This document shows, one piece after another, positions 15,871 through 47,685 of a DNA stretch of 64,000 bases. The stretch is from Paramoeba atlantica (taxonomy: Eukaryota > Protista > Discosea), in assembly GCA_977017575.1 (NCBI GenBank), contig CDRNVI010000059.1:310001-374000 (forward strand). Reading direction: 5' to 3'. The notes under the pieces were generated by a model, which had not been told where the DNA came from, did no database searches, and saw only the letters and a list, made by a program, of their open reading frames with translations. The position numbers were made by a program, and so were the translations under genes. Positions within the stretch are counted from its first letter, which is position 1. Every line of letters begins with the position of its first letter.

Positions 15871-15883
15871 ACGCTACATGCGA

Positions 15884-18224: not shown

Positions 18225-18285
<61 letters not shown>

Positions 18286-18795: not shown

Positions 18796-19839
18796 AATGC
18801 GTAAACTTAAAGTTTGCGTCGTATATCGGTTCTCCGCTCAATGGGTCCACCTATCTTCCTCACACTTCGCTTCAGTGATACTAGGTATCAACGAAGCGAC
18901 GCCGGGCTTGGAACCGGTATCTAGCGTGTTTAGGTAGGTGGTGATAAGTAATATTACCGTAGACCTCCCCCACGTAATAGAGGTTTGGCCTTTATTGGGC
19001 TGACGTCCAGTAATAGAGGTTTGGCTCGGGAGACCCACAGGACACACTCTTTTTGCTGAACCCAGCACAGCTTTGTAAACCGCTTCTTCCGTTTCGACCG
19101 CCGAGGGACTCGATATTCTTTCCATAAGAGCCTCGTCTCTCTACATTTGACACATTTTATAGTGTTCGAATAAATGATGATATTTGTGATGATTAAGGAA
19201 ATCAGAAATCACATGTAGCATGTACATGTGTAATTAGAACATTCGCAACTTATTGATGCACCATCATTCATACCATACAGTGCTCGTAATTTTTTGTGAA
19301 ATAAAAATACTGTAAAATAAAAATTTCTAAATGTTAATTCGTGAACAAATCTCGAAGTGATGTTCCGGCCTGTTTTTATTTGGTTGTTTTATTTTATTTT
19401 GGTTGTTCAATGAAAACGACCACCGCGTTTAACGAAGAATTGTATACGTAAGGAAATATACACGTGATTGTATGATCACCTAAAGATAATATTCTAATGA
19501 AGATATTCAATGACTGCTAAAAAAGCAGAAAAAGTAACGCGACCTCCTGATTCTGGGTGGTTTTCCGAATAACTTGCTCTGTCAAACACGCTTCTGACAT
19601 TTGTTCTTTGGTTCGAAGTTTCTTCCTTAGTTTCCTTCTCTATTTCAGCATGAGGGTGTAGATGACTACGGTCAAAGTACAGGAATATTGCATAAGTATA
19701 GGAATATTGCATAACTCTATTTTTGACCCCCCACCCCTTAATATGAGTTTCTTGATTTCGGTAGACAATTATAACCGTTGTATAGATCTGCGATTACACT
19801 GTCGGGAAACCACCTATTTTTTGTAATTTGAAACAAATT

Positions 19840-20260
19840 TTTACAAAGTCAAGGGTGGTATATTTCTCGAAAATATACGATTTATTTTATTTGTTACGTG
19901 TCTCACAGACTTGTATCCCCGGGAAAATGGAATACCGAACATATGGACGCTATAACGTACCCTAATCTGTCACTTTGAACTACTTTTACTTCAAATGAAG
20001 ACTTCACATATAAGGGGTGACCCTTCTAAAATGCTCTAAAATGGCCACTTTTCGTGGATTTTGCTTAAAAAAGCCCATTTTCACCTGTTTTTGGCTACTT
20101 TGGCGGGGTCACCCCCTATATGCAACTTTTCCATTTTTAGAAAATGTGATGTGCGTATATACTTGGAGTCTCATCTACAAGGAAAAGGATTTGTAAGATC
20201 CAATACAGGTGGGATCTTGCCAGGAGAAATTTTTCAAAAGTTAAAAAAAAATTAGAGGGG
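19840..20260. repeat. Dispersed Merlin-associated arm sequence (other copies 29172-29490, 38454-38772, ~54810-55258)
   Basis: tttttacaaagtcaagggtgg...taaggggtgaccc...ttagagggg is near-identical at 54810-55240. The other copies end in the gcaatattcctata TIR repeat. Confidence 0.8.
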
Positions 20261-20267
20261 GCCGCCC

Positions 20268-20400
20268 GCACATTTATAATGCATACTAAGCGGCACATTT
20301 ATAATGCATACTAAGCGGCACATTTATAATGCATACTAAGCGGCACATTTATAATGCATATAGCACATTCACATGCATATAGCACATTCACATGCATAAT
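20268..20400. repeat. 25-bp tandem repeat x4 then 19-bp x2, directly upstream of the IS30 ORF
   Basis: gcacatttataatgcatactaagcg at 20268, 20293, 20318 and (partial) 20343; gcacattcacatgcatata at 20363 and 20382. Confidence 0.9.
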
Positions 20401-20430
20401 TCTACGTTTTTCTCTCAGCTTTCTGTTTCA

Positions 20431-20955
20431 ATGGCACAATCAAAAAAGCGTATGGATCATGAAGATCGCACTAAAATAGAGGTGCTATACAACCAGAAAG
20501 GTTTCTCGCAGGAGGAAATAGCCGCAAAGTTGTCTGTAAATCAGTCAACGCTGAGCCGCGAGCTCACGAGAGGTATGCGTAACGGGGAGTATAATGCGAA
20601 GCGCGCGCAACGAGCGGCAAACACATCCATTTCCTCGCGGAAACACAAGCATCAGAAAATACAAGGTGATGTGCAAGAGAAGGTGATTGCTTTGCTGGGG
20701 AAGAGATTTAGCCCACAGCAAATCGCTACAACTCTCTTTAAGGAAGATGGGGTAAAGATTTCTCGTGTAGCCGTTTATGGATTCATCAAACGGGAAGACA
20801 GAGCAGGGAATTTAGTTCAGTTCCTGCGCCGGGGGGGAGGTCGCGGTAGAAGGCGACGGGGTACAAATCGCCTGAAAATACCGAATCGAACTGACATAAG
20901 CGAGCGCACAGGTTTCGACAATACTCGCTCCAGATATGGAGATTGGGAGTGTGAC
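20431..20955 (+). pseudogene. IS30-family transposase, N-terminal part (HTH to first catalytic Asp)
   Basis: SQEEIAAKLSVNQSTLSRELTRG HTH, FSPQQIA, IPNRTDISER, YGDWECD. Interrupted at 20955. Confidence 0.9.
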
Positions 20956-23900
20956 GGCACTTCCGCCGGCAGAAGAGGTTACAGTTCAAGTGTATTGATT
21001 TATGTATTGAGTTCGGTGGGGTGTAGCAAAAATCCATTATTTCATAGATGGAAGGTCATGAAAGTGAAGGATGAAGATAGGTGGAAGGTCAGTAGGAATA
21101 TGTGGTTCACCGACGGGAATGGGTGAAAGCATAAAAACGCGAGAGGAGTGTTCTGGGGGGAAAGGTGGAGAAGAAATCTCAACCGGTATGCTCTTTAGCC
21201 GAGAAGTGCAACATAAAGTTGGAATTGCAACAGAAAGGTGAACGACAACGACGTGCTACTAATAATTTTTGAAGACATTCATGATTTTTGCGATTGCACT
21301 TAAAGGAAGGACATGTTATATTAAGTTTTTTAGTAAGTGCCAACTTTACTGAGTAGTGACTAACTTTACGTTTTTTATGCATAAAACTGAAAATGGGGTA
21401 TACGTCAAAGAGAGGAAATTCAACCCTTTGACTTAACGTCAAAAACCGAAAAAGAGGGAAAAGTCAGGGGGGGGGGAGATCAGTCAGGGAGGAGGTGTAG
21501 CGTTGATGAAGGTGCAGAGTCGTGCGTATTTTTTAACCTTTGAAGACAAAATTAGGAACCTAATCTTTAATTTATCCTTTACGTATTCCTTTAACTACTG
21601 TTTTTACGAAATGTTTCTTAAAAAGCGAATTCTCCTTTGCCTCAACGGATTACAGAGGAACATTTTCCGCATTCTCAAAGCCGTCTACTTCTATTCGCGA
21701 ATCTCTATTCGGACATTTACGTCCTCTCTTTTTTCTAGCATCCTCTTTTGCGCGAAGCTCGCCCATTATCTCATCATGCGACTTCACGTCCTCCACGCAT
21801 TCCTTGTAGCAAAGTCTGTTCTGATACGCAACCCGTAACTGATTAAAATCTCGAGGAAATCTATACTGGTCCTCATTTTCTTTGACCACGGAGCTGAATC
21901 TTGATAAAACTTTCGGCCAAGGTATGTGCCTCGAAGATTTGTCGCGCACTTCATCGATGACACATTGCAGGAGCAAGCGCACTTCAAGGAGATTGAATTT
22001 CACGATCACGTTTCTTTGGCGAGGATCAATTCTTGGAGCATGTAAATGTGTTGCCAGGTGACATGCGTTGCTATTTCCTGTCGCGGTAAAATGTTGTACA
22101 GGTAAGTCATCAACCATTATGATCTCGTGCGCCCCCAAACCTACATCAAAATCTGTATCAAAAGTTTTAAATATTCTTGCACCAGGGATATCAAGTACGC
22201 AAACACCGCATATTCTGTGCCTCTGCGGAGTTGGTGATACGGAATCGAAAGGAACCACTAGATATGGTACGTGTGAAAGCTCGTGCAGAACGAGTACAGT
22301 GCTTGAAATGACATTGGCAAGAGAGCGAACTAGGGGAAGAAATAATTGCCAGTGCGAGACCTTGGTTATAACTTCCTCGACGTCATTCTCGGGCTTGCTC
22401 AAGTGTTCAAGAACTCGTTCGAACGTCGTATCTTTGTCCACCCGCGATGTATCGCACCGCAGAATACAGGGATCTCCCGCACACAAGTATTCAAGTGTGC
22501 TCATCATTGACGCTGCGGTGCACTCTCCACCTAGGAAACGCACCTTTTCCTCGTGCTTAGTTGGTGTAGCAGAAAGTGCGAAGTTAAATTCTACATCGTC
22601 TTTGCCAAGAAATACGGGCTCGCAACCAAACTTATTTTGCGCCCAGCTGCGAACATTACTCAGCTGATTGTCAGACAAGGAATGCGGGATAAGTGCATAT
22701 CCATCCCCAGATTCAACAGGGTGAACATATTGTGTGAAGAACAGTTCATGAGTCGTTAGTTGTTTCGCCACAGGGAGAAGTCCAAATGGACTATTACATA
22801 ATCTTGCATCGTCCGCCCCCAGGAAGAGAGAAGAGAAGGTTTCTTTCAAGGTTCGAAACAACAGAGCGTCGAAACACATCATATCCGGCGCTGATTTGAA
22901 TCTCACAGCACATTTCACATTACTTCGATAAATAAAGCTCCTTGTCAGCGCGTCTACAGTTTCTGCTGAGCTACGCGCGCGAAGCTTCACTTTAGCTTTC
23001 AAACGAGAATGAAAACTTTCACAAATGTTGGTTCCTCGGCTGGAACGATACACCATATTCTTATCCACGCGCGTCAAATTCACATCTGTAGGGTCACTGA
23101 GGCAGTCCCGCTCGATGTGTGCTATTGCGTACGGCCAGAGAGAAGCTAACTTGGGGTTCCATGTAAAGATGTCCGAATATTTTTCCTTCAGGAGTTCCAT
23201 TTTAGAAAGCAATTTTGCCGGACGTGGAATAACTTTCTCATGCGCATCAAGATGTTCCTTTTTTGGCAAAGCGATAGTAAGAGGCTCTACTACAGATCGG
23301 CAAAGCTCGGTGTAAAACATTTTCTGCCGATTTGATGCTGAAGTGCGTGGGATAACAGCTGCGAAACGGTGCAGCCAATGCCATAAATCGCATTTAATAT
23401 GTGCAGATGGAAAGTGGCGTTGTATTTTAGAACGCACTGTGCAACAGTTGTCAACATATATAGCCATTGCTTTGCTTCCTGGACGTGATGCTATGTTTGA
23501 AAGAACATTGTGCAAAGTGTCAAAACTTTCATTTCGAGTATATACGGCAGCCAAAATCTCACCAATTTCATTGTGAACAACAAAGTGAGAACGAAACGGT
23601 GCTTCCCCACGCAGTCGAATGCACTTTGCGGTCTCGAAAGTATGATCCGTTGCAAGCACTGTACCAGTCAGCTCGGACATATAGTTGTCACACTCCACCT
23701 GGCGCTGCTGGAGTAATGAAATCAAAACATCCTGAAAATGATCCACTGATGGAGTCATCCATTCTTGTGAAATTCGATTTGAAATCGCTTCCACGCAATT
23801 AGGATCCCAGCGAAATTCAAATTTTTCCGTGTGCTTTAATTCAAAAATGTGTCTTTCATCGCGCTTATTACTCAGATACTGCAACGTCCGCTGATGGTAA

Positions 23901-25028
23901 TCGACGGCATACACTTCTTGCAGAATACCTTGAAATTCACTCATATTAGAACCACTAGATCCTATTGCCATAATGGCCGTTGAAAGTCGTCTAGTCATCC
24001 CCAATTTTTCAGTTTTAATATTAGGAAAGGAATTTCGTGCCTTGTGGGACAGGCTGGAAATTAAGCTCTTTTCATCACTTGATATTACCTTACGACACTC
24101 AGTGCTACGACATTGATACACTTCACAAAGATAGTACATTGGTGTCGAAAGATCAAAAATCCGACGCACAGGAGAAAGCTTCATGAAAGTCAATCGCTCT
24201 TTGCAATGAAGACAGTGTAGGCTTTCTTTTTCGCCTTGGCGCATGGGCGCCCATATGATCCATGGCAAGGTAAAAAGCGTTTCCAATGAACTCCTAGGCT
24301 CCGGAGAAAAGAACCAAAGGGAAGTACATGTAGTTTTTGTTTTTAATTCTTCGTATGCCCTTCGAATTGCCGTGACTTGATGTGAAGACATTCCTGTTTC
24401 GAGCAAATGCGTCCAGTATTTTGTCACTTCTGTTCGTTCGTGTGTGGTTTCTTCTGGGCGAGAAGCGAACCGACAAAGCTCCGAATTTTCGGCTACTACA
24501 CGCGAAAGGGTGGTTGAAAGTTCGTTGTTCCTTTTTTCCATTTCCTCAATTTGTGTTTCTAGCTTTTTGATGCTTCCCGTAAGTTGCTTCTTTTCCTTGG
24601 CCATTGTTTGGATGACGTTCAGTAGGTCCGTTTCACAAGACATGACTTAAATAATCAGAAATCTAGAAATGATTTTTAGAGTACCAGGAAGGTTCAATAG
24701 TTTTGTTTGTAAAGTGATCATCTTGAACAGTCAGGGTACAATAGCTGAGGCTTTAAACTCTCAAATATGTACTAGAAATCGTTTCTGGGAAAACAATTTT
24801 GACGAAATTAAAAAATTATTGGACTACAAAAAAATTAGGTATGAAGTTCAGACTCAATAGTACACAACTTTCATAGGAACTATTAAGTTCAGACTCAATA
24901 ATAGAAACACACTTCAGTTACTATTGAGTTTACTATTGAGTTTTAGCAATCCAGATGCGTGCAACTCAATAGAGAACTCACTAGTGACTCTTCAACCCAA
25001 TAGTTGCTGTCACTATGGCGGAACTAAC
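20956..25028 (-). mobile_element. 4.07-kb DNA transposon, Dada-like (C/DxxH-class DDE), 8-bp TSD
   Basis: AGTGTGAC duplicated at 20948-20955 and 25029-25036. Short imperfect inverted ends (ggcacTTCCGCC / GGCGGAActaac). Subterminal actcaatag/ctattgagt motifs. Confidence 0.8.
21650..24643 (-). CDS. 997-aa DDE transposase (DUF6729-like Cys-rich N-terminus; Dada/MULE-like core), uninterrupted
   Basis: CLHC..C..C domain, ATDHTF, IYVDNCC, FP..HIKCDLWH (DxxH), RGTNICESFH. Confidence 0.8.
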   Translation of the reverse strand: MSCETDLLNVIQTMAKEKKQLTGSIKKLETQIEEMEKRNNELSTTLSRVVAENSELCRFASRPEETTHERTEVTKYWTHLLETGMSSHQVTAIRRAYEELKTKTTCTSLWFFSPEPRSSLETLFTLPWIIWAPMRQGEKESLHCLHCKERLTFMKLSPVRRIFDLSTPMYYLCEVYQCRSTECRKVISSDEKSLISSLSHKARNSFPNIKTEKLGMTRRLSTAIMAIGSSGSNMSEFQGILQEVYAVDYHQRTLQYLSNKRDERHIFELKHTEKFEFRWDPNCVEAISNRISQEWMTPSVDHFQDVLISLLQQRQVECDNYMSELTGTVLATDHTFETAKCIRLRGEAPFRSHFVVHNEIGEILAAVYTRNESFDTLHNVLSNIASRPGSKAMAIYVDNCCTVRSKIQRHFPSAHIKCDLWHWLHRFAAVIPRTSASNRQKMFYTELCRSVVEPLTIALPKKEHLDAHEKVIPRPAKLLSKMELLKEKYSDIFTWNPKLASLWPYAIAHIERDCLSDPTDVNLTRVDKNMVYRSSRGTNICESFHSRLKAKVKLRARSSAETVDALTRSFIYRSNVKCAVRFKSAPDMMCFDALLFRTLKETFSSLFLGADDARLCNSPFGLLPVAKQLTTHELFFTQYVHPVESGDGYALIPHSLSDNQLSNVRSWAQNKFGCEPVFLGKDDVEFNFALSATPTKHEEKVRFLGGECTAASMMSTLEYLCAGDPCILRCDTSRVDKDTTFERVLEHLSKPENDVEEVITKVSHWQLFLPLVRSLANVISSTVLVLHELSHVPYLVVPFDSVSPTPQRHRICGVCVLDIPGARIFKTFDTDFDVGLGAHEIIMVDDLPVQHFTATGNSNACHLATHLHAPRIDPRQRNVIVKFNLLEVRLLLQCVIDEVRDKSSRHIPWPKVLSRFSSVVKENEDQYRFPRDFNQLRVAYQNRLCYKECVEDVKSHDEIMGELRAKEDARKKRGRKCPNRDSRIEVDGFENAENVPL

Positions 25029-25036
25029 AGTGTGAC

Positions 25037-25492
25037 TTGATTGAAGGCGCGCAACATAGTGGCTATTTTCTCAGTTTAGTGGAGAGAAAAAGCCGCTACG
25101 GAGTTCTTCGGAAGTTGGAGAACAAGAAATCAGAAATTGTGGCCGAGGAGGTCACTCGTGCTCTGCAGGGGTTCCAAGTTTTCACTATCACGTACGACAA
25201 TGGAACCGAGTTCGCGAAACACGAACTAGTGAACGCTTCGTTGGGCTGTCAATCATTCTTTTGTCAGCCCTACGCAAGTTGGGAGAAAGGGGGCGTTGAA
25301 AATTACAATGGTCTTGTTCGTGATTTCTACCCTAAGCGAACATCGTTCACCCACATCACGCAAGCTGCGCTTGATACGACATCTGCAGCCATCAACGAAC
25401 GACCAAAAGATGTCCTGGAGAACAATTCGCCTATTGAATTGATCGAAAATATCAAGGTTATCTCCCCTCCTATGCTTCGTCCAGGCTTTTGA
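25037..25492 (+). pseudogene. IS30-family transposase, C-terminal part
   Basis: LIEG, LSLVERKSRY, TITYDNGTEFA, FCQPYASWEKGGVENYNGLVR, INERPK. Joins the N-terminal part in frame once the insert and one TSD are removed. Confidence 0.92.
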
Positions 25493-26359
25493 TGGACAGC
25501 TCACAGGATTCGCAGTAGTACGCTCGGATAGAATTCAAAGGATTTGCTCAAAAGATATTGCGTGAATATGGTAGCGCTCTTCAACCCTCATGAGTTCCAA
25601 TTTTGCAAGGATGTCAAACAAATTTGTTTCGAGGGGACATTCATATAGCAGGTCTGTTATAAACGCAAGCTGCTCTTTACAAAAAAAATTCCGATCAGGA
25701 GCCCAATGTAACATCCCAATGAATCGCAGGATTGGATATAATGTACGATTGAGGAACTTGGGAGTGTATCATCAGACGAAGTGCGATGAAGAGATGGGAC
25801 CGAGGTTTTCGTACATTCGTACTTGTCGCCTCCGTCTCAACGCGTGTCAAGACTTTTTTGATCTATACTCACCGTTTAAACCGCCGAATACCCCCCGAAT
25901 GCCTTCTGCAGTGCACTGATTTGGAAGAATATTCTATTCTCAGGTGTGTTACTGTGATGGGTTGTTGTTGCGATTGTTTGTAGTTGTCGGGATATGGCAA
26001 CATGGCCGATGCTTGTAGTAGAAGCATTGCTATGTAAATTCTACAACTTTGATAGAGAGACTTTGATAGAGAGAGAAGTTGGAGCATGAAAATTGTTTCC
26101 GGCATGCTTATTATACTTTGATGCCGATTGCTCTTTTTGCCCTCCTTTTTTACCAAGGAGTTTTTAGCGTCGCTTTGTCAAAACGGTCAGCATTAGGATG
26201 GGGAGGAAATGGGGGATTACTTTAGGAGTATGGCGTGTGCTGGCGAATTCATTCGTGAAACCTTTTCCTGATAGTGATAGATTATCCTGATAATGACAAT
26301 GATAGATTATCTGTATGCATCGTAGTAAATACACATCATTCACGAATTCATATCAAATA

Positions 26360-29169
26360 CAGTGGTTTCAGTTAATCTTGCCCCCCCCCGCTCGGAATTT
26401 TGATTTTTTTTATCCATTTTTGCTCATCTTTGCAGCATTGGACAGATCTCGTTCCCCTAGCGAAGAGCTTTGCCGCCTTTTTTTCATAGAGACCCCCTGG
26501 TGCCCCTTGGGTGACCCGAAAGTTGACCAAAATAATAAAAAATGATATTTTTTTACCATATCAAAAATGGAACGAAAAACGGATTTTATGTCCAAAAGTT
26601 AACTCTAAAGGAAAAGAACTAGTATCCGGAATGGCCTCCATTGTTTTGCAACACCTTTTGAAGTCTATTAGGGACTGAATCAATTGTGTTGCACACTTTA
26701 CGTTTTTCTTGAGGACGTTTTAGAATCTGAAAAGCTTTTTTAATGGCATCGGCGAGGGTAGCATGATTGTGGGGCTTAATTTTTTTCTTTATGATACCGT
26801 TCATTTGTTTCCAAACATTTTCTTTTGGATTTTAATCAGGCGAATTCGCTGGCCAAGACAATTGTTTAATACGATATTTAATCAATTCACCTTTTGCCAA
26901 GTTATGGGTGGTAGCATTATCCATTTGCACAGTCACATTGTCAACGTGGTCTTTGAGATAATGTAAAAACCCATTAGGCTTCTGAAAGGAGTCAAGGATC
27001 ACTCCCCCAGTGACCTTGTGCGCGTTTTCATAAGTTGTATTGTCATTGGGTTCAAACACGTGCAAGAAAAATCCGTGTTCTACACTAATACCCATCCAAG
27101 CCATTACCCCCTTCCCCCCATACCACCTACGGTTTCTGCAGCGAGGTTTTCTTTGGCACCCTTGAGGTCCAATGAAAAACTGAGACCCATGAACCCCACA
27201 GGTAAACAACTTTTCATCGGTCCAAATGATTTTGTTTAAATCTTCTTTAGGCCATGTAAGCAATTCGTTTGCTAATCTCAAACGCTGCGACTTGTGTTCC
27301 TCAGTTAGGTCACAGTTCGGCGACTTAGCCCATCTACCGTAATCAATATTTTTTAAAATAGTTCTTATTTTGTTTCAGGGTTCGCAGAAACTATAAAACT
27401 ATCAATATAGTACTATATAGTTACTATAAACTTTTTTCGAAAACTATAAAAAACTATATTTTTTTGTTTCACATTTTAGGCACTCCGAAGCTCACCAACA
27501 CGCCATAAATACACGGCGAATTCATTTGTGTACGATTTTTCTTATTTTTAAACCCGAAAATTGATGCCCGAAATAAAAGTTACGAGGGGTAGTTTCTGCA
27601 AAGATTATTTTATTGAACTGCTGCACACGGAGGAAAGTAAACAAGCGGTTGAATGTAACTAGTGTCAGGAGGGGACGTACCCCAGTCCCATCGTGTGGCC
27701 TTGACAGATTGCCTTGTGCGAATCTTGCGTCCCGAACATCTTCTCACTGCATCGCTGTCGCCGCGCGTTGGCTGGAGCCACCGACGTTATGTCTTGGGAC
27801 TGAATAACTGCTGCTCACAATTCTATGAGTTTGAATAAATACAATCATATGAGTCTGAATAAATTACGCGGTGTGTTGTCGAGTGGAGAGTTTGCACTTC
27901 CTTTCACTCCTTTCGCGTGCGTTTCATTGCTATTTCCGAGGAGATGACACACTAGTTGATGATATTTTTCGGTGGTGATGGAATCGCGGGGAAGAGGAAG
28001 GATGTTTCGACAGCTATGTAACCCAGGATAAAGTGGACGAGGGAGGTTCTAAAAGCACCTTTAAACCACCACAAAAATGGAATGATATCTCCCGGTTTGT
28101 AAAGGATTCCGACGTGCCAAAAGAATCTTTAACGGACAAACCCTTCCATTTTTATGGTGGTTTGCCAAAGGTGCTTTTAGTATCTCCCTTGTCCACTTTA
28201 GCTTGGGTTACATTTTTTTCAGAATTTGTTGTCATATCATACGTATGTAAGCGTGTAAGAACGCATGTAGAGGCGTGTGTATGTCCTTCACAAGCGGAGA
28301 GGACTCAAAAAATATCACTTGTAAAGTGAAAAAAACTTTATAGTTTTCTTATAGTTTTATAGTAAAATATAGTAAATATAGTACTATATAGTAACTATAT
28401 TCAATGAAAAAAACTATATTTTACTATATTATAGTTTCTGCGAACCCTGTTTTGTTTAACGAACATTTATACCCCATATTCAGCACTTGCTCGTGTATCC
28501 AAGTATAAGTTAAGCAACCATCGTACGTTTCGTTTTCATCATCCACAATTTTTTTTACCATGTCCTTAAACCGCCTTGATGATTTTTTTCCTGGGGATTT
28601 TTGGGGTGTAAGATCTTCTCCTTCCTTCCACAGGTTAACAATTCTTCTTATGGTGCGACGGTCACGTCCGAAATTATTAGATAATTTATGTATATGTTGC
28701 TTTATTATTTCTTTTCTCTCGCAAAGAGGTAATGCCACGGTTCCTTTGTGGGATATTGGGGGATTGTCTTCTCTTTTGTCATTCCATCCTTGTACGTACT
28801 CCCCCTGTTTGGGGTTAGAGGGTCTGGTCTGCATAATGTAGAGGTGTTGACTATATTAAATTAGGCGATAGGGATGGTACTAGACATAGAGCTTTCAAAT
28901 TATCAATTTAGAACACTATTACTCGTACTTACATGTTCAAAATGTACAAAAAATCGGGAAAATGTGACAAAAAATGGTTGTGTACACAGAAAACGTCCAA
29001 AAAAAACAGTGTTTTTCGGACCCAGGGGGCACCAGAGGGTCTCTATGAAAAAAAGGCGGCAAAGCTCTTCGCTAGGGGAACGAGATCTCTCCAATGCTGC
29101 AAAGATGAGCAAAAATGGATAAAAAAAATCAAAATTCCGAGGGGGGGGCAAGATCAACTGAAACCACTG
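26360..29169 (-). mobile_element. Tc1/IS630-like element with long TIRs, TA target; transposase pseudogene (DD32E, one TAA) split by a MITE
   Basis: TA|CAGTGGTTTCAGTT(A/G)ATCTTGCCCCC ~150-bp inverted ends. Coding pieces 28834-28450 and 27375-26619 join in frame (..SLNKIRTILK..WTDEK..MDNATTH..WPANSPD*NPKE). Confidence 0.88.
27376..28449. mobile_element. Non-autonomous hAT-type element (MITE), 1074 bp
   Basis: TIR CAGGGTTCGCAGAAACTATA at both ends. 8-bp TSD TTTTGTTT at 27368-27375 and 28450-28457. Subterminal ctata/tatag motifs. Confidence 0.88.
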
Positions 29170-29558
29170 TATAAGGGGTGACCCTTCTAAAATGCCCTAA
29201 AATGGCCACTTTTCGTGGATTTTGCTTAAAAAAGCCCATTTTCACCTGTTTTTGGCTACTTTGGCGGGGTCACCCCCTATATGCAACTCCATATGCTACT
29301 CCCTCTATATGCAATTCCATTTTTATAAAATGTGATGTGCGTATATACTTTGGAGTCTCATCTACAAGGAAAAGGATTTGTAAGATCCAATACAGGTGGG
29401 ATCTTGCCAGGAGAAATTTTTCAAAAGTTAAAAAAAAATTAGAGGGGCTCTGCAATATTCCTATACTTATGCAATATTCCTATACTTCGGCACACCGAAG
29501 TTTTAGGCACCGATTTCAACTTTTGCCAAAATTAGGTGCGGGGTGCTATGGGAACTCA

Positions 29559-30420
29559 CCTTTGCTCCCGGTGAGGCCCCGGAGTTGCGAGAGGCCTCCA
29601 TACCCCACAACTACCACCTTCCCCCCCTATTTAGCGGGGGTCGCGCGAGCGACCCCTGATAAATGGGGGGAAGGTGGTAGTTGTTTTGGGGGAAATGAGA
29701 GGCCGAACGCACGGAGGGGCCGGCCGGGCCACTGAGTCACGTGAAAGTGTGACCTAAAACTAAACCTAGATTTTGTTTACCCGTCTGCACAACAGAACCG
29801 TAAATAGCACGTAAAGATGGTTGGCCGAGGTACAGAATAAATTTACCTTTGCTCCCGGTGAGGCCCCGGAGTTGCGAGAGGCCTCCATACCCCACAACTA
29901 CCACCTTCCCCCCCCCCTATTTAGCGGGGTTCGCGCGAGCGACCCCTGGTAAATGGGGGAAAGATGGTAGTTTTGGGGGAAATGAGAGGCCGAACGCACG
30001 GAGGGGCCGGCGGAGTCACTGAGTCACGTGAACGTGTGATACCCAAAAACTAAACCTATACTAAACCAATTCACAGTATTTTGTGACAGTAGACGGCTAT
30101 GCAATATTCCTATACTTATGCAATATTCCTATACTTATGCAATATTTCTATACTTGTGCAATATTCCTATACTTATGCAATATTCCTATACTTATGCAAT
30201 ATTCCTATACTTATGCAATATTCCTATACTTATGCAATATTCCTATACTTATGCAATATTCCTATACTTCCACCCCCCACAACTACCACCTCCCCCCCCC
30301 TATTTAGCGAGCGACCCCTGGTAAATGGGGGGAAGGTGGTAGTTGTTTTGGGGAATATGAGAGGCCGAACGCACGGAGGGGCCGGCCGGGCCACTGAGTC
30401 ACGTGAAAGAGTGATACCCA
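29559..30420. repeat. About 287-bp module containing a 76-nt near-perfect hairpin, 3 copies (duplicated at 38841-39705; another at 49655-49832)
   Basis: caactaccaccttccccc..attta..ggggtcgc-gcga-gcgacccc..taaatggggg.aaggtggtagttg at 29608-29683. Confidence 0.85.
30099..30274. repeat. 19-bp tandem repeat (Merlin TIR-type unit) ending in an internal Merlin end; duplicate at 39381-39556
   Basis: tatgcaatattcctatact x~9, ending cttccacc as at 47451-47458. Confidence 0.88.
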
Positions 30421-36711: not shown

Positions 36712-37093
36712 TTCAAAAAAACAAAGGTCTTCAAAAAAACAAAGGTCTTCAAAAAACAAAGGTCTTTAAAAAAACAAAGGTCTTCAAAAAAACAAAGGTC
36801 TTCAAAAAAACAAAGGTCTTCAAAAAAACAAAGGTCTTCAAAAAAACAAAGGTCTTCAAAAAAACAAAGGTCTTCAAAAAAACAAAGGTCTTCAAAAAAA
36901 CAAAGGTCTTCAAAAAAACAAAGGTCTTCAAAAAAACAAAGGTCTTCAAAAAAATAAAGGTCTTTAAAAAAATAAAGGTCTTCAAAAAAACAAAGGTCTT
37001 CAAAAAAACAAAGGTCTTCAAAAAAGCAAAGGTCTTACAAAAAAACAAAGGTCTTCAAAAAAACAAAGGTCTTCAAAAAAACAAAGGTTTTCA
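36712..37093. repeat. 17-bp tandem repeat (about 22 units) in the LINE 5' region
   Basis: aaaaaacaaaggtcttc units; duplicate at 45994-46375, with 2 more units at 46572-46606. Confidence 0.95.
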
Positions 37094-40013
37094 ATGATCT
37101 TCCAGAAAAACTCTTCCTTCTAAATGCGGAAGCCAACCATTTTCATGGTATGCTATGTTTATTGAATCTCCCGCCTTTGTTAGCAGAACTCACTTTGAAT
37201 AATAACATATTTAAAGGTCCTTTAAATCTTAGCAGTCTACCGCTCACTCTTACGTCTTTAAATTTGAACGGCAACCTCCTCAATGGATAAAGTGGACGAG
37301 GGAGGTTCTAAAAGCACCTTTAAACCACCACAAAAATGGAATGATATCTCCCGGTTTGTAAAGGATTCCGACGTGCCAAAAGAATCTTTAAGGGACAAAC
37401 CCTTCCATTTTTATGGTGGTTTGCCAAAGGTGCTTTTAGTATCTCCCTTGTCCACTTTAGCTTGGGTTACATTTTTTTCAGAATTTGTTGTCATATCATA
37501 CGTATGTAAGCGTGTAAGAACGCATGTAGAGGCGTGTGTATGTCCTTCACAAGCGGAGAGGACTCAAAAAATATCACTTGTAAAGTGAAAAAAACTTTAT
37601 AGTTTTCTTATAGTTTTATAGTAAAATATAGTAAATATAGTACTATATAGTAACTATATTCAATGAAAAAAACTATATTTTACTATATTATAGTTTCTGC
37701 GAACCCTGTTTTGTTTAACGAACATTTATACCCCATTTATATTCATTTATACCCCATTTATATTCAGCACTTGCTCGTGTATCCAAGTATAAGTTAAGCA
37801 ACCATCGTACGTTTCGTTTTCATCATCCACAATTTTTTTTACAAGGTCCTTAAACCGCCTTGATGATTTTTTTCCTGGGGATTTTTGGGGTGTAAGATCT
37901 TCTCCTTCCTTCCACAGGTTAACAATTCTTCTTATGGTGCGACGGTCACGTCCGAAATTATTAGATAATTTATGTATATGTTGCTTTATTATTTCTTTTC
38001 TCTCGCAAAGAGGTAATGCCACGGTTCCTTTGTGGGATATTGGGGGATTGTCTTCTCTTTTGTCATTCCATCCTTGTACGTACTCCCCCTGTTTGGGGTT
38101 AGAGGGTCTGGTCTGCATAATGTAGAGGTGTTGACTATATTAAATTAGGCGATAGGGATGGTACTAGACATAGAGCTTTCAAATTATCAATTTAGAACAC
38201 TATTACTCGTACTTACATGTTCAAAATGTACAAAAAATCGGGAAAATGTGACAAAAAATGGTTGTGTACACAGAAAACGTCCAAAAAAAACAGTGTTTTT
38301 CGGACCCAGGGGGCACCAGAGGGTCTCTATGAAAAAAAGGCGGCAAAGCTCTTCGCTAGGGGAACGAGATCTCTCCAATGCTGCAAAGATGAGCAAAAAT
38401 GGATAAAAAAATCAAAATTCCGAGGGGGGGCAAGATCAACTGAAACCACTGTATAAGGGGTGACCCTTCTAAAATGCCCTAAAATGGCCACTTTTCGTGG
38501 ATTTTGCTTAAAAAAGCCCATTTTCACCTGTTTTTGGCTACTTTGGCGGGGTCACCCCCTATATGCAACTCCATATGCTACTCCCTCTATATGCAATTCC
38601 ATTTTTATAAAATGTGATGTGCGTATATACTTTGGAGTCTCATCTACAAGGAAAAGGATTTGTAAGATCCAATACAGGTGGGATCTTGCCAGGAGAAATT
38701 TTTCAAAAGTTAAAAAAAAATTAGAGGGGCTCTGCAATATTCCTATACTTATGCAATATTCCTATACTTCGGCACACCGAAGTTTTAGGCACCGATTTCA
38801 ACTTTTGCCAAAATTAGGTGCGGGGTGCTATGGGAACTCACCTTTGCTCCCGGTGAGGCCCCGGAGTTGCGAGAGGCCTCCATACCCCACAACTACCACC
38901 TTCCCCCCCTATTTAGCGGGGGTCGCGCGAGCGACCCCTGATAAATGGGGGGAAGGTGGTAGTTGTTTTGGGGGAAATGAGAGGCCGAACGCACGGAGGG
39001 GCCGGCCGGGCCACTGAGTCACGTGAAAGTGTGACCTAAAACTAAACCTAGATTTTGTTTACCCGTCTGCACAACAGAACCGTAAATAGCACGTAAAGAT
39101 GGTTGGCCGAGGTACAGAATAAATTTACCTTTGCTCCCGGTGAGGCCCCGGAGTTGCGAGAGGCCTCCATACCCCACAACTACCACCTTCCCCCCCCCCC
39201 TATTTAGCGGGGTTCGCGCGAGCGACCCCTGGTAAATGGGGGAAAGATGGTAGTTTTGGGGGAAATGAGAGGCCGAACGCACGGAGGGGCCGGCGGAGTC
39301 ACTGAGTCACGTGAACGTGTGATACCCAAAAACTAAACCTATACTAAACCAATTCACAGTATTTTGTGACAGTAGACGGCTATGCAATATTCCTATACTT
39401 ATGCAATATTCCTATACTTATGCAATATTTCTATACTTGTGCAATATTCCTATACTTATGCAATATTCCTATACTTATGCAATATTCCTATACTTATGCA
39501 ATATTCCTATACTTATGCAATATTCCTATACTTATGCAATATTCCTATACTTCCACCCCCCACAACTACCACCTCCCCCCCCCCTATTTAGCGAGCGACC
39601 CCTGGTAAATGGGGGGAAGGTGGTAGTTGTTTTGGGGAATATGAGAGGCCGAACGCACGGAGGGGCCGGCCGGGCCACTGAGTCACGTGAAAGAGTGATA
39701 CCCAAAAACTAAACCTAGATCTTGTTTGCACAACAGAACCGTAAATGGCACGTAAAGATGGTTGGCCGGGGATTGTGGTTTGGCCGCAGGATTGTGTATT
39801 TATTTTCCTATGCATTGTCACGTTCTTTACCTTTTGGGGGGCAAATTGTGAACGTCGACCAGAAAAGGGGCATTCTAAACACTGTCAACATGGGTAACCA
39901 ACTTGAAGGTATACAGGATATGAAATGAAATAACCTGTACTTTCTGCGGGAAGAAATTTCCTTCTGCGTGAAGAAATAACGACGGTGCACATGGACACAA
40001 AAAATAACGAGCC

Positions 40014-40280
40014 TTACTCCGAGTCACTACTTTCGTCTTCTTCGTCGCGGTAGAAACTAACACCTTTGCAGAATGTACGAATATCTTGGAAGATGCGACG
40101 TACACGAGAACCTCCGTTGACAGAGAGTGTCGCGTTAGAAATTTCTGCGAAAAACTTCATTCGGTGAGCGCGAGATATTTCATCGTTGCCAAGACGGCCC
40201 CCACGAGCTTTGCGTTCCTTTTAGGAGGCCATTGGCATGTTCCACGGTATTAGTGTGGATGCCGGAGACTGTTACCCAAT
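40014..40280 (-). pseudogene. Merlin transposase C-terminal piece (catalytic Glu)
   Basis: Continues the ORF broken at 46607 (..VNHRKHWV|TVSGIHTNTVE). ACCCAAT is duplicated at 40274-40280 and 46607-46613. Confidence 0.85.
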
Positions 40281-42906
40281 CACTCACTCACTCACTCACT
40301 TTACACTAAGCCCCGGAATAGGGCATTAGTTAAATATCTATCTGTATTTACGCTCAATACATTCATCATCTAACTCTCCAACTGATTTCGTTTTCACGTC
40401 GATTGCCTCGTACTCGGTGCGCTTCGAAAGCGAAACACACAGCACCTTGCGTACACTGGATTTTATTGTCCCATCTTGGTTTCCGTCAAAGGGGATATTT
40501 ATCCGCGTTGTGAGGTCGCGTCTCGTGGTCTACCTTTCTTGGTGCGGTTCGCGGCGGTACTTAATTGTGGGCCAGGCGCGGGGCAATGCTGTGATAAGTG
40601 CCGTTCTAGTGTAGTAGCCGAGGTCTTGCGCCTTTTCTCTGAAAGAGCGCCGAAAAGAGCTGTCTTTGCCAACGTGTCACACTTATCGTTGTATGGGTTG
40701 CCGCAATGCCCCTTTACTTTAATCACGTAGAATTTGACGCCATTCTCCTCTAAGGTCTTTATTGCACCACCTAAATCCCAATAAATGTCGCTGTTTGGAA
40801 GGCCATTGTATCCTATTAGGTAATACTTTCGCCGCGTATTGCGTATAAAATGCCATACTATCCACGAATCCGTATGCAGTACGATTGTACCCTCAACTTT
40901 GGGTGCTCTCTGAATAGCTAGTAGTGCCGCATAAAATTCCGCTCTTTCTGGCGATGGTGTGCCAAGAATCTCCTTACAAACAGTAGAACTAGCCACTTCA
41001 TGGCCACACTGAACTTCAACAATCCCAATTCCAATCTTTCCGATGTAACCAGAACTAACTGAGGCGTCGGTATAAAGGTGTAGAACGTTGTTGTCACTTG
41101 AGAAAGGTGTTGGACCTTCTTCAGCGTACTGCAGGGCTGAAAGATCATTTTCCCGCTGTGCAGCAGCTGCAATGCGGTGCCAACCGCTTGATCTACAACC
41201 AATATACATTTTAGGATTCTCTAGCCCCATTTGAAGTTTTTCAACATGTTTTTGCCAACATTTTCTATCCTCCGCATATACCAGGGCTTCCTCGACTACT
41301 AGTCCCATATCCCCGGTGCAAGCTTCGGATGGAGAACGAATTCGACTCTTTTCTTTAACGCGCCACTGCATCAGTTCCGAATATATCTCTGAATGCCGTA
41401 TTAAGTGCCCTACAAGACGAGCCCGGTTAACTTTGTGCAGTGTGGAAAAAAGTGGGGTGTCTATATATAAGGCGGATATTGGCACGCTTTTCCCAGAATG
41501 ATCCAGTTTCGGACACTTACAAATAATACGACGCATCTTATTTACCTGTATATCTACCCATTTCAATGTGGTTTCGCTCAACACTAGTGTGCCCGAGTTG
41601 TAATTTAGGATAGGGTATACGAGGGCATCGAACAAACGAAGTTTTGTCTTGACGCTCAAGGGCGATACCCATATGCCCCGAAATTTTGAGAAACCTGCCC
41701 ACGTAAGTCGCAACCTGTCCCTAATACATGCCAATGGTTCAGTTTCATGGAAAAGATGTCCCAGATACCTGTAGGAAAGTACTTTGGGCACCGTCCCCAA
41801 AGGATCGGATATCATTTCATCGGGGCCTCGTTGCCTTCCTAGTTGCATCCACGCTGTTTTAGCAGGGCCTACTGCTATTCTTAGGTTCGCGGAGAGGGCT
41901 TGTTCCGCTGTATCCTCAATCATACTCTGTAGATCAGCCTTGTTATCTGAAAAGAAAAGGAGATCATCAGCATAATTTAGATCCGTAAGACGTGTTTCCC
42001 TCAGGCCTCTGCTCTTGGTACCTTTGGATGATAGAAGGATGCCATGGGATTTTGAATCAATAGCTTTGCTTAATATACGATCCAGAACCATTACGAAGAG
42101 GTAGGGAGCGAGGACATCCCCTTGAAGAATGCCGGTTGTAATGGGGAATGTTTCTGTTAAACCTTATGGTGTTCGCACGACCCCTCGCATATTCCGATAT
42201 ACTGACATAATCATTTCTCGCAATTTCGGTCCAATGTGAAACGCCACTAGGGATGCATGAATGGCACTAAATGAAACGGATGGAAAAGCTTTCGCAAAAT
42301 CTACAAAACCAATGCACATCCCGTTTCCTCTTAATGCTTTTACTCGTGCTTCGTTGAGAATCGCCTGGGCTTGCATTGTCGAACGGTCAGGTCTGAACCC
42401 ATATTGATTATGGCGAAGCACAGGCTCTACATACGGACGAATTCGTTGTAATATTAAACAGTTCATAAGTTTAACAACACAATTTACTAAGCATATGGGC
42501 CTCCAATTCTTTAAAAGAGTCAAGTCACCTTTCTTCGGTATCGGAACTTGTAGGACGTCACCCCAAACTTCCGGAGCCAATCGCGTATCGTAAACGCGGT
42601 TGATAATGCTGAGCAACCACTTTCTAAGATAATCATTATCAACGATGCACGCAAAAGCCTCCATGGGGATTTCATCCTTTCCCGGTGCCTTACCCCTCCC
42701 AAAGTGTGAAATTCCGCTTCGAAGCTCTTCCTCAGTGAAAGGGGCGTCCTCAAGTGTGTTTGTTGGAAGATTCGCCTCTAAGAATCTTATATTGTCGTCG
42801 CCCCCTGTGTCTCCAGCAAAAGCTTCAAAAAACGTTTTTATCTCCGCCAGCCTCTGTCTGTTTGAGGTCCCCGGTATGTTGAAGTCTGCTCGATCAACTC
42901 CACATA

Positions 42907-44344
42907 CTGTGACCCCCCCCCTTTATATGCACACGTTTTTGGGGTTTGTGCATATTAAGGGGGGGGGGTAAGAGGGGGAAGAACCAGCCCCTCCGGGAAA
43001 AAAATTGCGCCGCTTCGCGGCGCCTTTATTTCCTGTGCGTTTTTCGAACTTGATTGATTGATTGATTTTAAGGGCATGTATCCCATAGGGACGTACCCTC
43101 CCGGAGATAGCCGGGCACTAATTTTTTTATTATTCCAAAATACACTTATTATTCCAATTTTTTTAGTATTCTGCCACCTGAAAGTTTTCTCAAATTATAT
43201 TCCATGGATGCCTTTGTGCCTGGCTACATAGAGAATCTTTTGTATCTATCTTTAGCGAATGCACAAGAACGGCGCGGTTACGGCCTAGGGATCGTAGAAG
43301 GCTCAAGCGATGACGATAGTGAAGTGAATTCTGTTTCTTCCGATGAAGAACATGGTAGCGATATAAAAAATGTTAGCCTCGAAACCCCTGATGGGGTTCT
43401 ACCACTGATGACGGCAGTGATAACGAGGAAGGTTTGGTTGATTCCAGTGGGGCCCGTAAAGTAAAAGTTGCCAAGCGTTCTAGAGTCGTTCTAGATTCTC
43501 GGAGAAACGTACGCCGCGATGTTCCTTTCGTTGTGAAGCATAAGACTGTTTTCAAAACAGAAATGGCGAACGCACCACAGAAATGTCTCAAACGCACCAC
43601 AAAGCTATGGCAACAGTACAACAATGGATGAGAAGAACCTTTGGTGAATTATACACAGTGCATTCTAAATCTCAACTAAAAAAGTGGGATGCAGAAATCA
43701 ACCGGCAACTTTCCAGTAACCTAGGCGAGGAACGCCTGCTAAAGCTTAAGTTCTTGATGGTGGATGGCGCCACTGTCAACCATGTTGCCCGTGTGAATTG
43801 CAAAGGTTTCTTAAAATCCATTTACGATCGTATTGACCCGGTGGGAGAAGAGGACCTAGGAAACATACAGCGCGGAATAACTCAAAAGTACCGTGTGTCA
43901 CTATTATCTTGCATAGGACACATGTTAAATAATGTCTGCAAAACGGCGTTTCAACCCTACTCAAGGAATTTAGTGAAAGCAAAGATGCTCCTATGGCCAC
44001 ACACGTTTGCCAAATGTTGGAGCATCTATACGAAATTTCCGAAGGCACAGGAGCACCACAAGGATTACGATCATCCCTTTTGCACCACAAGAAAAGACTA
44101 GATAAGAATCATAACATGCGTCTCTGGAAACAGGTAATGTGGTTTCGACCAAGTTCGGTTGTGCTGTTCGGTCGGCCAATACGTCAACATGCTTTGTGAT
44201 ATTGGCGAACTGAAATTTTGTCTGCGCAACCACCGTGAAAAAAAATTATTTTTTTTTGGAGGAAAAAAAGTCCCCTTTAACCAAAATTTGTGCATATTAA
44301 GGGGGGGGGAGGGAAGGGGGTGCATATTAAAGGGGGGGTCACAG
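42907..44344 (+). mobile_element. Internally deleted TA-duplicating DNA transposon inside LINE copy 2
   Basis: Duplicate of 33623-35062, with TA flanks. Confidence 0.88.
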
Positions 44345-46369
44345 TATTTCTTTTACTGCTCTCCATGGGCTGGCGTGATTTTTCTTCAGCTTAGACTCTA
44401 GGACTTCACAAGACCTAGTTATAGCGTCCTCGATTGCTCCCCTGTTGTGTGATACTAGTTCATTAAAGTCCTTATGCCTTCTGCTTGAAAAAAATGAAAA
44501 TGTTGCGTAGGTTATCTGTTTCAGCACCTTGCAATCCTTCAACAGGTGCCTGTATATCAAGAGATATTTTTGTGATTGGTTTCGGAATTTCCTTTCCCGA
44601 AGATCGAAGGCAAGAGGCAAGAAGATCCCAGGAAGGAAGATCTTCTGTATGCAGTTGCGCTGCGACCTGTTCACAAATTCTGTTGTTAAACTTCTCTGCA
44701 TGTTCTGGGTTTGATAATTGAAACCAGTGTATTTTCGGTCTTTTGATGTTGGACGATATCTTCCATTTGAATCGAATCTCTGCTCGCACAAGAAAGTGCA
44801 CTGTCGGCGTAGGAGCGGCAAAAACTTAATGATGTCGCAGAGCGCATGCAAAGCGTGAGCACACTGCAATGTGATCCAACTGGCGTTTAGCATCATTAGG
44901 CAATATGCATGTCCATACTCGCTTGCTAGGGCATAAGGAGTGTCCTGATTTGCAATCTATCCCTTCCAAAAGCCCCTTCAACCTTTCAACAGCAAGTTCG
45001 TCTTCTTCTGTCGTTTTGCTGAAAGTGAGAGGTGCATTTAAGTCCCCAAGTAGAAGTGCGGGTCTTCGAGGGGCTTTGCCTACTGCTTCGTGAAACGCGT
45101 TTGTCAAAGAAATATCAAACTCTTGTTTGGCCTCCTCTGGGGAGTCACGCGTCGGCCCATATGCGTTGAGCATAAAGGCTGACCCTCCTTCGATGTTGAA
45201 CTCGCCGGCCATTATCCTATCATTTACTTTTCACGCCTTTATTGGCTCTTGCGTGATGAACCCCATACCGTTATACCCGTTCACTGCAGACATAAGGTAG
45301 ATGAAAAAGATTTTATTCCCGTGTCGAAGCTGGCGCTTTAAAATATCAAATCCTTCGCCAGAAATAAAAGTAAACCTTGTCTCCTGGAGATCCAGTATAT
45401 GCAAGTTGGTTTGTGCCATGTATCGCACAATCTCGTGCAATCGAGCAGAAGCTTTCAGTTTGAAAACGTCGTCACCTTCAAGTTTCAATGATGTCGTATT
45501 AAGAGTGCCTACAGCCAGACACTTCTTCACAGCAGACCCTTTCGGGTCGTCGTCGCGTAGGGCATGCTTGCCACACAGTACCCTAGTTTTCCGTGCTTTT
45601 CTACGGTTGTTCGAACGCCCAGGTTTTCGAATGCGTGCTCCGCATAACACGATTCGCGAATCATACGGCGGAAAGGGAAGCGTTTCCGATCGCTGGTGGT
45701 ACTTTACCCGCCAGCGACCTAGCTGAAAGAGGAAACCAGGTCCTCGTTGAGTTACAGTGCCCTTCCAAATCCGAAACTCCGCACTGCTCGCGTATCTCCA
45801 GCAGAGTGCGATGTTGTAACCTGGGCGAAGAATTTTACTAATGCTCATCACTGCACGGGAGCGAAGTTTAGCATGCCCGTCTGACCCCAACATCGGGTCA
45901 AACAGAGCACCCCGACCTAACGCGGACCTAACCAGAAGTTTAATAATTCCTAGCTGTGCAGGCCCGGACGCCTCCGCCATATTTTTGAAAATGTTCAAAA
46001 AAACAAAGGTCTTCAAAAAAACAAAGGTCTTCAAAAAACAAAGGTCTTCAAAAAAACAAAGGTCTTCAAAAAAACAAAGGTCTTCAAAAAAACAAAGGTC
46101 TTCAAAAAAACAAAGGTCTTCAAAAAAACAAAGGCCTTCAAAAAAACAAAGGTCTTCAAAAAAACAAAGGTCTTCAAAAAAACAAAGGTCTTCAAAAAAA
46201 CAAAGGTCTTCAAAAAAACAAAGGTCTTCAAAAAAATAAAGGTCTTCAAAAAAATAAAGGTCTTCAAAAAAACAAAGGTCTTCAAAAAAACAAAGGTCTT
46301 CAAAAAAGCAAAGGTCTTACAAAAAAACAAAGGTCTTCAAAAAAACAAAGGTCTTCAAAAAAACAAAGG

Positions 46370-46571
46370 TTTTCAATGATCTTCCAGAAAAACTCTTCCT
46401 TCTAAATGCGGAAGCCAACCATTTTCATGGTACGCTATGTTTATTGAATCTCCCGCCTTTGTTAGCAGAACTCACTTTGAATAATAACATATTTAAAGGT
46501 CCTTTAAATCTTAGCAGTCTACCGCTCACTCTTACGTCTTTAAATTTGAACGGCAACCTCCTCAATGGTAT
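46370..46571 (+). pseudogene. About 200-bp host-type LRR gene fragment inside the LINE 5' repeats (duplicate at 37090-37286)
   Basis: Translates FNDLPEKLFLLNAEANHFHG.LCLLNLPPLLAELTLNNNIFKGPLNLSSLPLTLTSLNLNGNLLNG. Flanked on both sides by 17-bp repeat units. Confidence 0.8.
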
Positions 46572-46606
46572 AACAAAGGTCTTCGAAAAAATAAAGGTCT
46601 TCAAAA

Positions 46607-47390
46607 ACCCAATGTTTTCGATGGTTTACGGCCCCATGGCGCCATTCCCGATTTAGACACTTGCTGGCACCAGCGCAGTCCGTATATATTTGGCAACGGG
46701 AGTTCTTGGCAAGATGGCACACATGAGCGGTCATAGTGGCAGCATCTGTGCTTTCCAGGTACTTTACAAATATCTCTTTCATGGGATAGTGTATGCGACC
46801 TTCTTCATCTGGTATCTCATCGCAGTGTACCAAAGTATGGTACCAAGAGGAACCATCGCGTCGGACTCTTTTCCCTCGACCGCACCCCATTCGCTTGATC
46901 CGGGAAACGCACGTTTCGTCCTTTTGCATGAAAAGAACTGTGCCCTGTGAAGCGTCGAAGCGCATGTCGTGCGCAGTGCTAACAATGTATTCGAAGAATT
47001 GAAACAATTCGACAATTGTAAACTTGCCAAGAGTGCATTCGCGGGAAACTTGTTGAATGGACATACCCTCGATGAGACCGTACAACACGATGAGTGTGTC
47101 CTTAATACTTCGTTTGCTTTTTAAATTGAATAAGGGTTCCATCGCACTGTAACGTGCTCTACACTCTGTAGTTTCCACGTAAGGACAATACCAATGGGAA
47201 CCATCATGTACACACATGATTTCCTTGGTGTCATGATACTTGACTTTGAGGCACCACACCTGCTGGGCAACAAGTTTGTGATTCTTGAGCCAACGTGATA
47301 AAAGTTCTTCAGTGCTGTCCGCAAAACTGGAGAAAGAGATGCTCTTTATACATTCGAACTTCTCACACCCCTCGCAAAACTAATTCACTG
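46607..47390 (-). pseudogene. Merlin/IS1595-like transposase, N-terminal and catalytic part
   Basis: RWLKNHKL..WC..C..C finger, QKDET..KR..GRGKR, IYTD, HGAVNH. No in-frame ATG was found. Confidence 0.85.
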
Positions 47391-47537
47391 TATTTTGTGA
47401 CATGATTAGACGGCTATGCAATATTCCTATACTTATGCAATATTCCTATACTTCCACCGATGACTACAACGCCAAAATTCGTTTCGATGAGTACTCATCC
47501 AAACTACAACACCAGTGTCCATAATACAGTACGCAAA

Positions 47538-47610: not shown

Positions 47611-47685
47611 ACTTTAAATGTGGACTGTCAACTTGGTGTGGAAGAATTCCTCCTTAAGAGAGATAGGTAGCGCACAATATTTGCA

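Follow-up and report, generated by a model that had tools for sequence, protein, structure and literature searches.

The window analysed here, a 64-kb stretch of Paramoeba atlantica contig CDRNVI010000059.1, contains a 27.8-kb segment that is bounded by the inverted ends of a DNA transposon of the Merlin superfamily and by an exact 9-bp target-site duplication. Most probably, the segment is a single Merlin element that was enlarged in place by nesting, by deletion or recombination, and by tandem duplication. Taken by itself, the segment is a transposon nest of the ordinary kind rather than a cargo carrier, and nothing suggests a function. In the following, L-numbers (L001, L010, L034, L047, etc.) denote sister loci in the genome, and C-numbers denote contigs.

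Ends of the segment and target-site duplication

The original prediction, made from the window's letters, placed an exact 9-bp duplication at both ends of the segment. This was recovered: GATGACTAC directly abuts the ends at 19670 and 47458, and this 9-mer occurs only twice in the window, as listed below.

19661-19669: left target-site duplication GATGACTAC, 9 bp, the 9-mer being found only here and at 47459
47459-47467: right target-site duplication GATGACTAC, 9 bp, partner of the copy at 19661

Two or more copies of GATGACTAC appeared somewhere in 7 of 100 shuffles; the real pair abuts both element ends exactly. The chance of a 9/9 flank match is approximately 4e-6 per end pair, or 2e-5 when the five right-type ends are allowed for.

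The left end begins at 19670 as GGTCAAAGTAC... and continues with two 19-bp units (“End B”). The right end terminates at 47458 as ...TACTTCCACC, and its “End A” (47377-47458) is likewise composed of two 19-bp units, with the final letters ...CTTCCACC. The outer inverted ends, which read GGTCAAAGTA... and GGTGGAAGTA..., both start with GG and agree at 42 of 46 positions (counted by hand). The same ends are borne by 1.23-kb non-autonomous sister copies at L001 (1496-2724, flanks GCTGTAAGG) and L010 (1496-2720, flanks CACATGCCC), and a 9-bp target duplication is present in three of the three copies of the Merlin family, i.e., those in the window, L001 and L010.

Five right-type ends and one left-type end are found in the segment. 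The extra internal ends that had been predicted at approximately 29488, 30274, 38770 and 39556 were all confirmed, and all four have right-end polarity (29441-29487 and 30063-30274, with duplicates at 38723-38769 and 39346-39557). The sole other left-type end, at 49533, is part of a related family and lies outside the segment. A pairing of the left end with the internal right end at 30274 was considered and rejected, given that the flank of the latter is Merlin position 740 (in the numbering of the 1.23-kb copies, used throughout) and not GATGACTAC.

Identity of the outer element

The outer transposase gene lies on the minus strand, starts at the right end and reads inward. As had been predicted, all three catalytic motifs are present inside the segment, and they belong to one broken gene: KDET at 46923, YTD at 46686, and the TVE of HTNTVE at 30964, with a duplicate at 40248. 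The gene head runs from 47379 down to 46614 (255 N-terminal codons) and comprises a CxxC-rich N-terminus, KDET and YTD, up to ...HGAVNHRKHWV. The tail picks up at 30996 as TVSGIHTNTVEHANGLLK, followed by a frameshift; the window's gene is both split and frameshifted. In L047, a second copy of the same element located 273 kb upstream on the same contig, the gene is uninterrupted at the split point (...HRKHWVTVSGIHTNTVEH).

The family was settled only by an all-against-all protein search followed by a Pfam scan of its matches. When the N-terminal part of the gene in the window itself was scanned with Pfam, there was no match, and a word-based protein search returned four relatives, all unannotated. 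For L047:2693-3436, the top Pfam match was PF12762 (IS1595/Merlin DDE domain), at a sub-threshold score (E-value of 0.036, 14.5 bits, with a cut-off of 27). The all-against-all search yielded 45 relatives; PF12762 was found in nine of the ten full-length relatives, six of which reach the 27-bit cut-off. In the alignment of the relatives, D87/E88/T89, D167 and H186 are invariant and E202 is nearly invariant, and the aligned columns correspond to the D of DET, the D of TD, the H of VNH and the E of HTNxxE. Genome matches to the N-terminal part coincide with loci that match PF12762 directly. Once the nests are removed, the Merlin parts reconstruct to approximately 2.3 kb with one gene of approximately 355 codons, and the sister transposase genes have open frames of 342 and 355 amino acids. 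Open frames of intact sister transposases are located at C99:155552-156202 and C56:348344-348982.

Judged from its sequence, the outer element is a member of the Merlin superfamily, given its GG termini, its 9-bp duplication, the aligned D/D/E residues, and relatives with PF12762. The same features agree with the original description of the ends as Merlin-type. The outer ends were also considered as a property of an IS30-family transposase, whose gene is the only strong domain match inside the segment. This assignment was rejected because the IS30-family gene has its own, different 25-bp end arrays and because it is a Merlin-like gene that runs inward from the right end. The claim of a Merlin transposase inside the segment holds for the split outer gene; the transposase that is most easily seen, that of the IS30 family, belongs to a nested foreign element.

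Parts of the outer element

In comparison with the 1.23-kb copies and L047, the Merlin share of the segment amounts to approximately 2.2 kb, the rest being foreign or duplicated. A complete copy would have approximately 2.3 kb. When matched to the sister copies, the outer Merlin falls into three parts that are in order, in one orientation and without overlap:

19670-20260, plus strand: left arm, equal to positions 1-576 of the 1.23-kb copies and 97.4-97.8% identical to L001 and L010
30275-30996, minus strand: middle part, consisting of a hairpin module from position 740 and then the C-terminal part of the gene; 30307-30954 is 97.4% identical to L047
46607-47458, minus strand: right arm, consisting of the gene head and End A, 98.6% identical to L047

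Arm positions 577-739 (163 bp) are missing. The middle and right parts are separated by a retrotransposon, much of which lies within a tandem duplication:

30997-46606, minus strand: non-long-terminal-repeat (non-LTR) retrotransposon splitting the Merlin gene, with an AP-type (apurinic/apyrimidinic) endonuclease, a reverse transcriptase and RNase H; the span includes the duplicated block
28026-37284 and 37285-46573: the two copies of a 9.28-kb tandem duplication, with 99.5% identity over 9,295 columns

The retrotransposon has a (GTGA)n 3' tail and is flanked by a 7-bp duplication, ACCCAAT (30990-30996 and 46607-46613). Its removal restores the Merlin frame exactly, as it is found in the uninterrupted gene of L047. 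Close to the 5' end, the retrotransposon has a tandem array of 18-bp units (AACAAAGGTCTTCAAAAA; 36712-37094 and 45994-46376), with two further units at the 5' edge (46572-46607).

The two tandem copies meet in a simple join with GG/GGATAA microhomology, and they differ by four substitutions in 4.4 kb and by array-length indels. Without the tandem duplication, the segment would measure 18.5 kb, with its ends unchanged.

The left-arm block

Between the left arm and the middle part lies a block of approximately 10 kb (20261-30274), which contains an IS30-family element, a transposon with a DUF6729 gene, three pieces referred to as U, E1 and E2, and part of a second Merlin copy:

20261-25545, plus strand: nested IS30-family element, with its gene at 20431-20955 and 25037-25492 and a 25-bp repeat array at 20261-20398; the right end is missing past 25545
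20956-25036 (one TGTGAC copy included), minus strand: 4.1-kb transposon in the IS30 gene, with a 997-amino-acid open frame at 21650-24643 that has a DUF6729 domain
25546-26357: low-copy non-coding piece U, which begins where homology to the IS30 sister copies stops and has no long open frame
26360-29169: TA-flanked element E1 (1.75 kb), with CAGTGG termini and inverted ends of approximately 156 bp; an uninterrupted copy is at C12:532691-534436
27376-28449: non-autonomous element E2 (1.07 kb) inside E1, with ends CAGGGTTCGCAG... and more than 15 copies at 96-98% identity
29170-30274, plus strand: partial second copy of the same Merlin family, covering sister positions 325-915, approximately 58 bp, and then 701 to the end

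The intact sister of the IS30 gene (L034:1468-2511) matches NCBIfam NF033563 with 230 bits (E-value of 4e-68, cut-off of 80) over profile positions 1-266 of 267, and has an N-terminal helix-turn-helix (HTH_38, 34 bits). The window copy is 96-100% identical to this gene in both halves. On the strength of these matches, the nested element is classed as a member of the IS30 family, foreign to the outer Merlin. Copies on C100 and C70, which are 96.7-98.2% identical, have inverted 25-bp arrays on both sides.

The DUF6729-gene transposon is flanked by a 6-bp duplication, TGTGAC, and its removal joins ...GDWECD to LIEGAQH..., collinear with the intact L034 gene (which has GDRECD). This transposon is possibly Dada-like; a literature search on DUF6729 found nothing.

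The remaining pieces are less regular. Window 25538-26360 is 98% identical, in a search of the genome, only to C30:1065521-1066343 and C3:474276-475098, and U may be filler DNA captured in a repair event. E1 is probably Tc1/mariner-like, as its ends suggest, and its two flanks are unlike each other. E2 has an 8-bp duplication, TTTTGTTT (27368-27375 and 28450-28457), and this, together with its ends, points to a hAT-like miniature inverted-repeat transposable element. The second Merlin copy has a complete right end, with eight 19-bp units up to 30274, where it abuts position 740 of the outer copy, and the arm segment 325-576 consequently occurs twice in the segment. Given that the flanks of E1 are unrelated, that 325-576 is doubled and that 163 bp are gone, the left arm would have undergone at least one step of deletion or recombination. 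Nests and a duplication are present as had been predicted, yet the three independent nests proposed are better described as two primary interruption sites holding at least six foreign pieces.

Further observations concern the nested families in the genome at large. The IS30-family transposon is abundant in this eukaryotic genome (more than 100 matches, with many intact open frames of 320-350 amino acids), and a literature search for an IS30-like eukaryotic superfamily found no paper describing one. The copies on C70 and C100 each sit between a different pair of inverted flanks, as if inserting into palindrome centres like the bacterial IS30. A hairpin-forming module of approximately 210 bp, with an adjacent stretch, is common to the Merlin family, where it corresponds to positions 618-915 in the 1.23-kb copy, and to the inner right arm of IS30-family copies. 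Its sites are at 29558-29768, 29845-30058, 30275-30433 and 49657-49833 in the window, and at 423-636 and 2341-2531 in L047. A Merlin right end abuts this module twice, next to position 740 in the window (at 30274) and next to position 722 in L030, and the module may be a favoured landing site.

Homologous locus and genome searches

The region C26:450001-500000 is collinear with window 9597-60568 and 99.3-99.7% identical to it, flanks included, and it has the same GATGACTAC pair and the same nests. It is without window 32432-35313 (2.9 kb of retrotransposon coding sequence), and it has a tandem duplication of its own, of 12,036 bp, which joins window-equivalent position 35473 to 20557. The two homologous segments are 27,790 and 27,829 bp long, with different internal layouts.

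Over the 4.4 kb that are common to the four tandem copies, the two loci are told apart by 12 sites, whereas there are 4 differences between the window copies and 0 between the C26 copies. Given that the copies within each locus agree at the 12 locus-separating sites, each locus was duplicated independently after the split. Both window copies carry all 12 variants specific to the window's contig; therefore, neither of them is the other haplotype pasted in. The different duplication and deletion at C26 also mean that the segment kept changing in place. Since many genome matches occur in contig pairs, the C26 locus most likely represents the second haplotype, or else a homeologue of recent origin, and not a second transposition.

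An empty site was sought by searching the genome with both flanks, and only the filled locus and its filled C26 homologue were found. The original prediction had also proposed a search for the same composite at other loci with different target-site duplications. No such locus was found: in the genome search, the junction between the IS30 gene and its insert, the junction between U and E1, and both flanks were found only here and on C26, where the flanks are identical. Nor was any non-transposon cargo found between the ends, every open frame of at least 120 amino acids with a domain match being transposon-encoded. The only non-repeat piece inside the segment is 0.8 kb of non-coding low-copy DNA.

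Proposed history of the segment

The history that best explains these results is the following. An autonomous Merlin of approximately 2.3 kb would have inserted once beside the cluster of transfer RNA (tRNA) genes described below, making the 9-bp duplication GATGACTAC. The inserted copy would then have died and grown where it sat. A non-LTR retrotransposon would have landed in the transposase gene, while the left arm would have received the IS30-family element (later hit by the DUF6729-gene transposon), the second Merlin copy, and the TA-flanked element carrying the element with the 8-bp duplication. Through at least one deletion or recombination, the arm would have lost 163 bp, and some of the nests their matching flanks. 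Lastly, a 9.28-kb stretch, comprising most of the retrotransposon together with some of the nested sequence, would have been duplicated in tandem. The results show the ends and their duplication, the family of the outer element, the two nests whose removal mends a reading frame, and a tandem duplication that arose independently of the C26 locus; the order of the left-arm events, and the placement of all nesting after the Merlin insertion, are what we infer from this arrangement. Growth in place was the first of the readings offered in the original prediction, as a small Merlin inflated where it stood, and it is favoured by Merlin parts that are collinear with the sister copies, by nests whose removal restores the reading frame, and by the independent rearrangements on C26.

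Several points weigh against this history. Both homologous loci are filled, and the Merlin insertion is read from the ends and the duplication only. Part of the Merlin arm (577-739, 163 bp) is missing. No clean duplication surrounds the left-arm block, E1 has mismatched flanks and 325-576 is present twice, and the history therefore needs steps of deletion or recombination that were not observed. The nesting cannot be dated to after the insertion, because the sister-copy identities of the outer and the nested families overlap (approximately 96-99%). Finally, the tandem duplications are known from the assembly alone.

Alternative explanations

A different possibility, the second reading offered in the original prediction, is that the nest was already formed at a donor site, and that the Merlin transposase moved the whole 15-18 kb as a composite, with the 9-bp duplication made on arrival and only the tandem duplication added later. 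The intact outermost ends and the perfect duplication are in keeping with such a move, as are the several further right-type ends inside, which would have given the transposase a choice of partners. The lack of a second copy is compatible with it as well, given that no donor copy stays behind after cut-and-paste transposition. However, the left and right parts of the Merlin (1-576, and 740 to the end) complement each other as pieces of one copy, with the same orientation and similar divergence, which is not expected of two unrelated copies. The composite is found at no other site in the genome, and the rearrangements in both homologues indicate that growth in place does happen here. The efficiency of cut-and-paste transposition also falls as an element grows longer, which counts against the move. 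Overall, we consider this explanation unlikely, and movement as a ready-made composite has no support.

A stronger version of the same idea, which we hold to be very unlikely, is that the Merlin transposase carried a unit of at least 15 kb, with its nests already inside, to a point 70 bp from a tRNA cluster, and that the family may preferentially land beside such clusters. If true, this would imply a DNA transposon with a very large cargo capacity and with a targeting mechanism connected to RNA polymerase III genes, and this in a lineage from which mobile DNA transposons are thought to be absent.

It is highly improbable that the 9.28-kb duplication, or the 12-kb one on C26, is an assembly artefact in which reads from repeats or from two haplotypes were falsely joined: although the two C26 copies are identical over 4.4 kb, the total lengths are nearly equal (27,790 and 27,829 bp) despite unlike layouts, and both duplications rest on the assembly rather than on reads, the window copies differ by the 4 substitutions and array-length indels and both carry all 12 contig-specific variants, the junction is a simple microhomology join, and an artefact would explain only the duplicated 9.3 kb, leaving 18.5 kb with the same ends.

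Comparison with known systems

Merlin elements (Feschotte 2004, as summarised in PMC8101967 and PMC10045372) have 5'-GG termini, make an 8-9-bp duplication, encode a DDE transposase related to IS1595/IS1016, and are a few kb long. The element described here resembles them in its GG termini, its 9-bp duplication, its single DDE transposase, its reconstructed length of approximately 2.3 kb, and its 1.23-kb non-autonomous derivatives. It differs in that its ends are built of 19-bp direct repeats, with 2 to 14 units depending on the copy, and in that the family has an additional right-type end in its interior, as well as a hairpin module shared with the IS30-family elements of this genome. It also departs from the canonical size, this copy having reached 27.8 kb through nesting.

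Merlin sequences have been surveyed in kinetoplastids (Bodo saltans and Perkinsela sp.), where they have an IS1595-type DDE domain and where some copies are located in “safe haven” strand-switch regions (PMC8101967). That survey found no inverted ends or target duplications, and the elements were judged immobile (PMC8101967). The present family shares the IS1595-type DDE domain, and its genome has a kinetoplastid-type spliced-leader motif: the 19-mer has 11 genome matches at one mismatch or fewer, and its reversed control has 0. Unlike the kinetoplastid relics, however, this family presents clear ends and 9-bp duplications in three copies, and its sister copies are 96-98% identical. The GG termini, the 9-bp duplication and the sister copies provide clean structural proof of past Merlin mobility in a small protist genome, which is of interest given that the kinetoplastid survey (PMC8101967) had only relics without ends or duplications.

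As in nested transposon clusters, the insertions are layered, each with its own target duplication, and their removal restores the host element. What sets this case apart is that two homologous loci have each undergone a tandem duplication of their own, in a very small protist genome (45.7-Mb assembly). Bacterial composite transposons and plant macrotransposons offer another parallel, in that unrelated DNA lies between outer inverted ends of one family, with a single duplication around the entire unit. Here, however, the end-bearing parts are halves of a single copy, no second composite insertion exists, and the interior consists of transposons and not of host genes. The segment is a record of the layered build-up of mobile DNA beside tRNA genes, involving at least five families of both classes, including the bacterial-type IS30, and followed by further change in two homologous copies, each with its own history of tandem duplication and deletion.

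Surroundings of the segment

The neighbour of the segment on its right side, outside the element, is a tRNA cluster:

47538-48151: five tRNA genes (Thr, Trp, Ser, Ala, Ala)

The right duplication stops 70 bp before tRNA-Thr (47538-47610), which matches the distance of approximately 70 bp given in the original prediction. Ends of the Merlin family are near tRNA clusters at several independent loci: at 70 bp here, at approximately 190 bp in L028 (549-1458), and at approximately 1 kb in L030 (1496-2969). In a partial list of the tRNAs of the genome, Merlin-family matches are also located 1.4-3 kb from tRNAs at C53:222.6k, C56:350.4k and C59:27.3k. This proximity could reflect targeting or accumulation in a safe haven. 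Transposons are plentiful on either side of the tRNA cluster in the window: 49533-49833 is a related Merlin end, 52279-54349 is a fragment of a retrotransposon, and 54815-55260 is a fragment of a Merlin arm.

Most of the top-scoring tRNA matches, many with identical scores, are on contigs C137-C185, and the transposon families studied here are found almost only on contigs up to approximately C104. More than one organism may be represented in the assembly.

To the left of the element lies a GC-rich array (15880-17955) of approximately 21 tandem 96-bp units that are 96-98% alike, of which the C26 homologue has far fewer. It is followed by a CT-rich stretch of low complexity (18225-18800).

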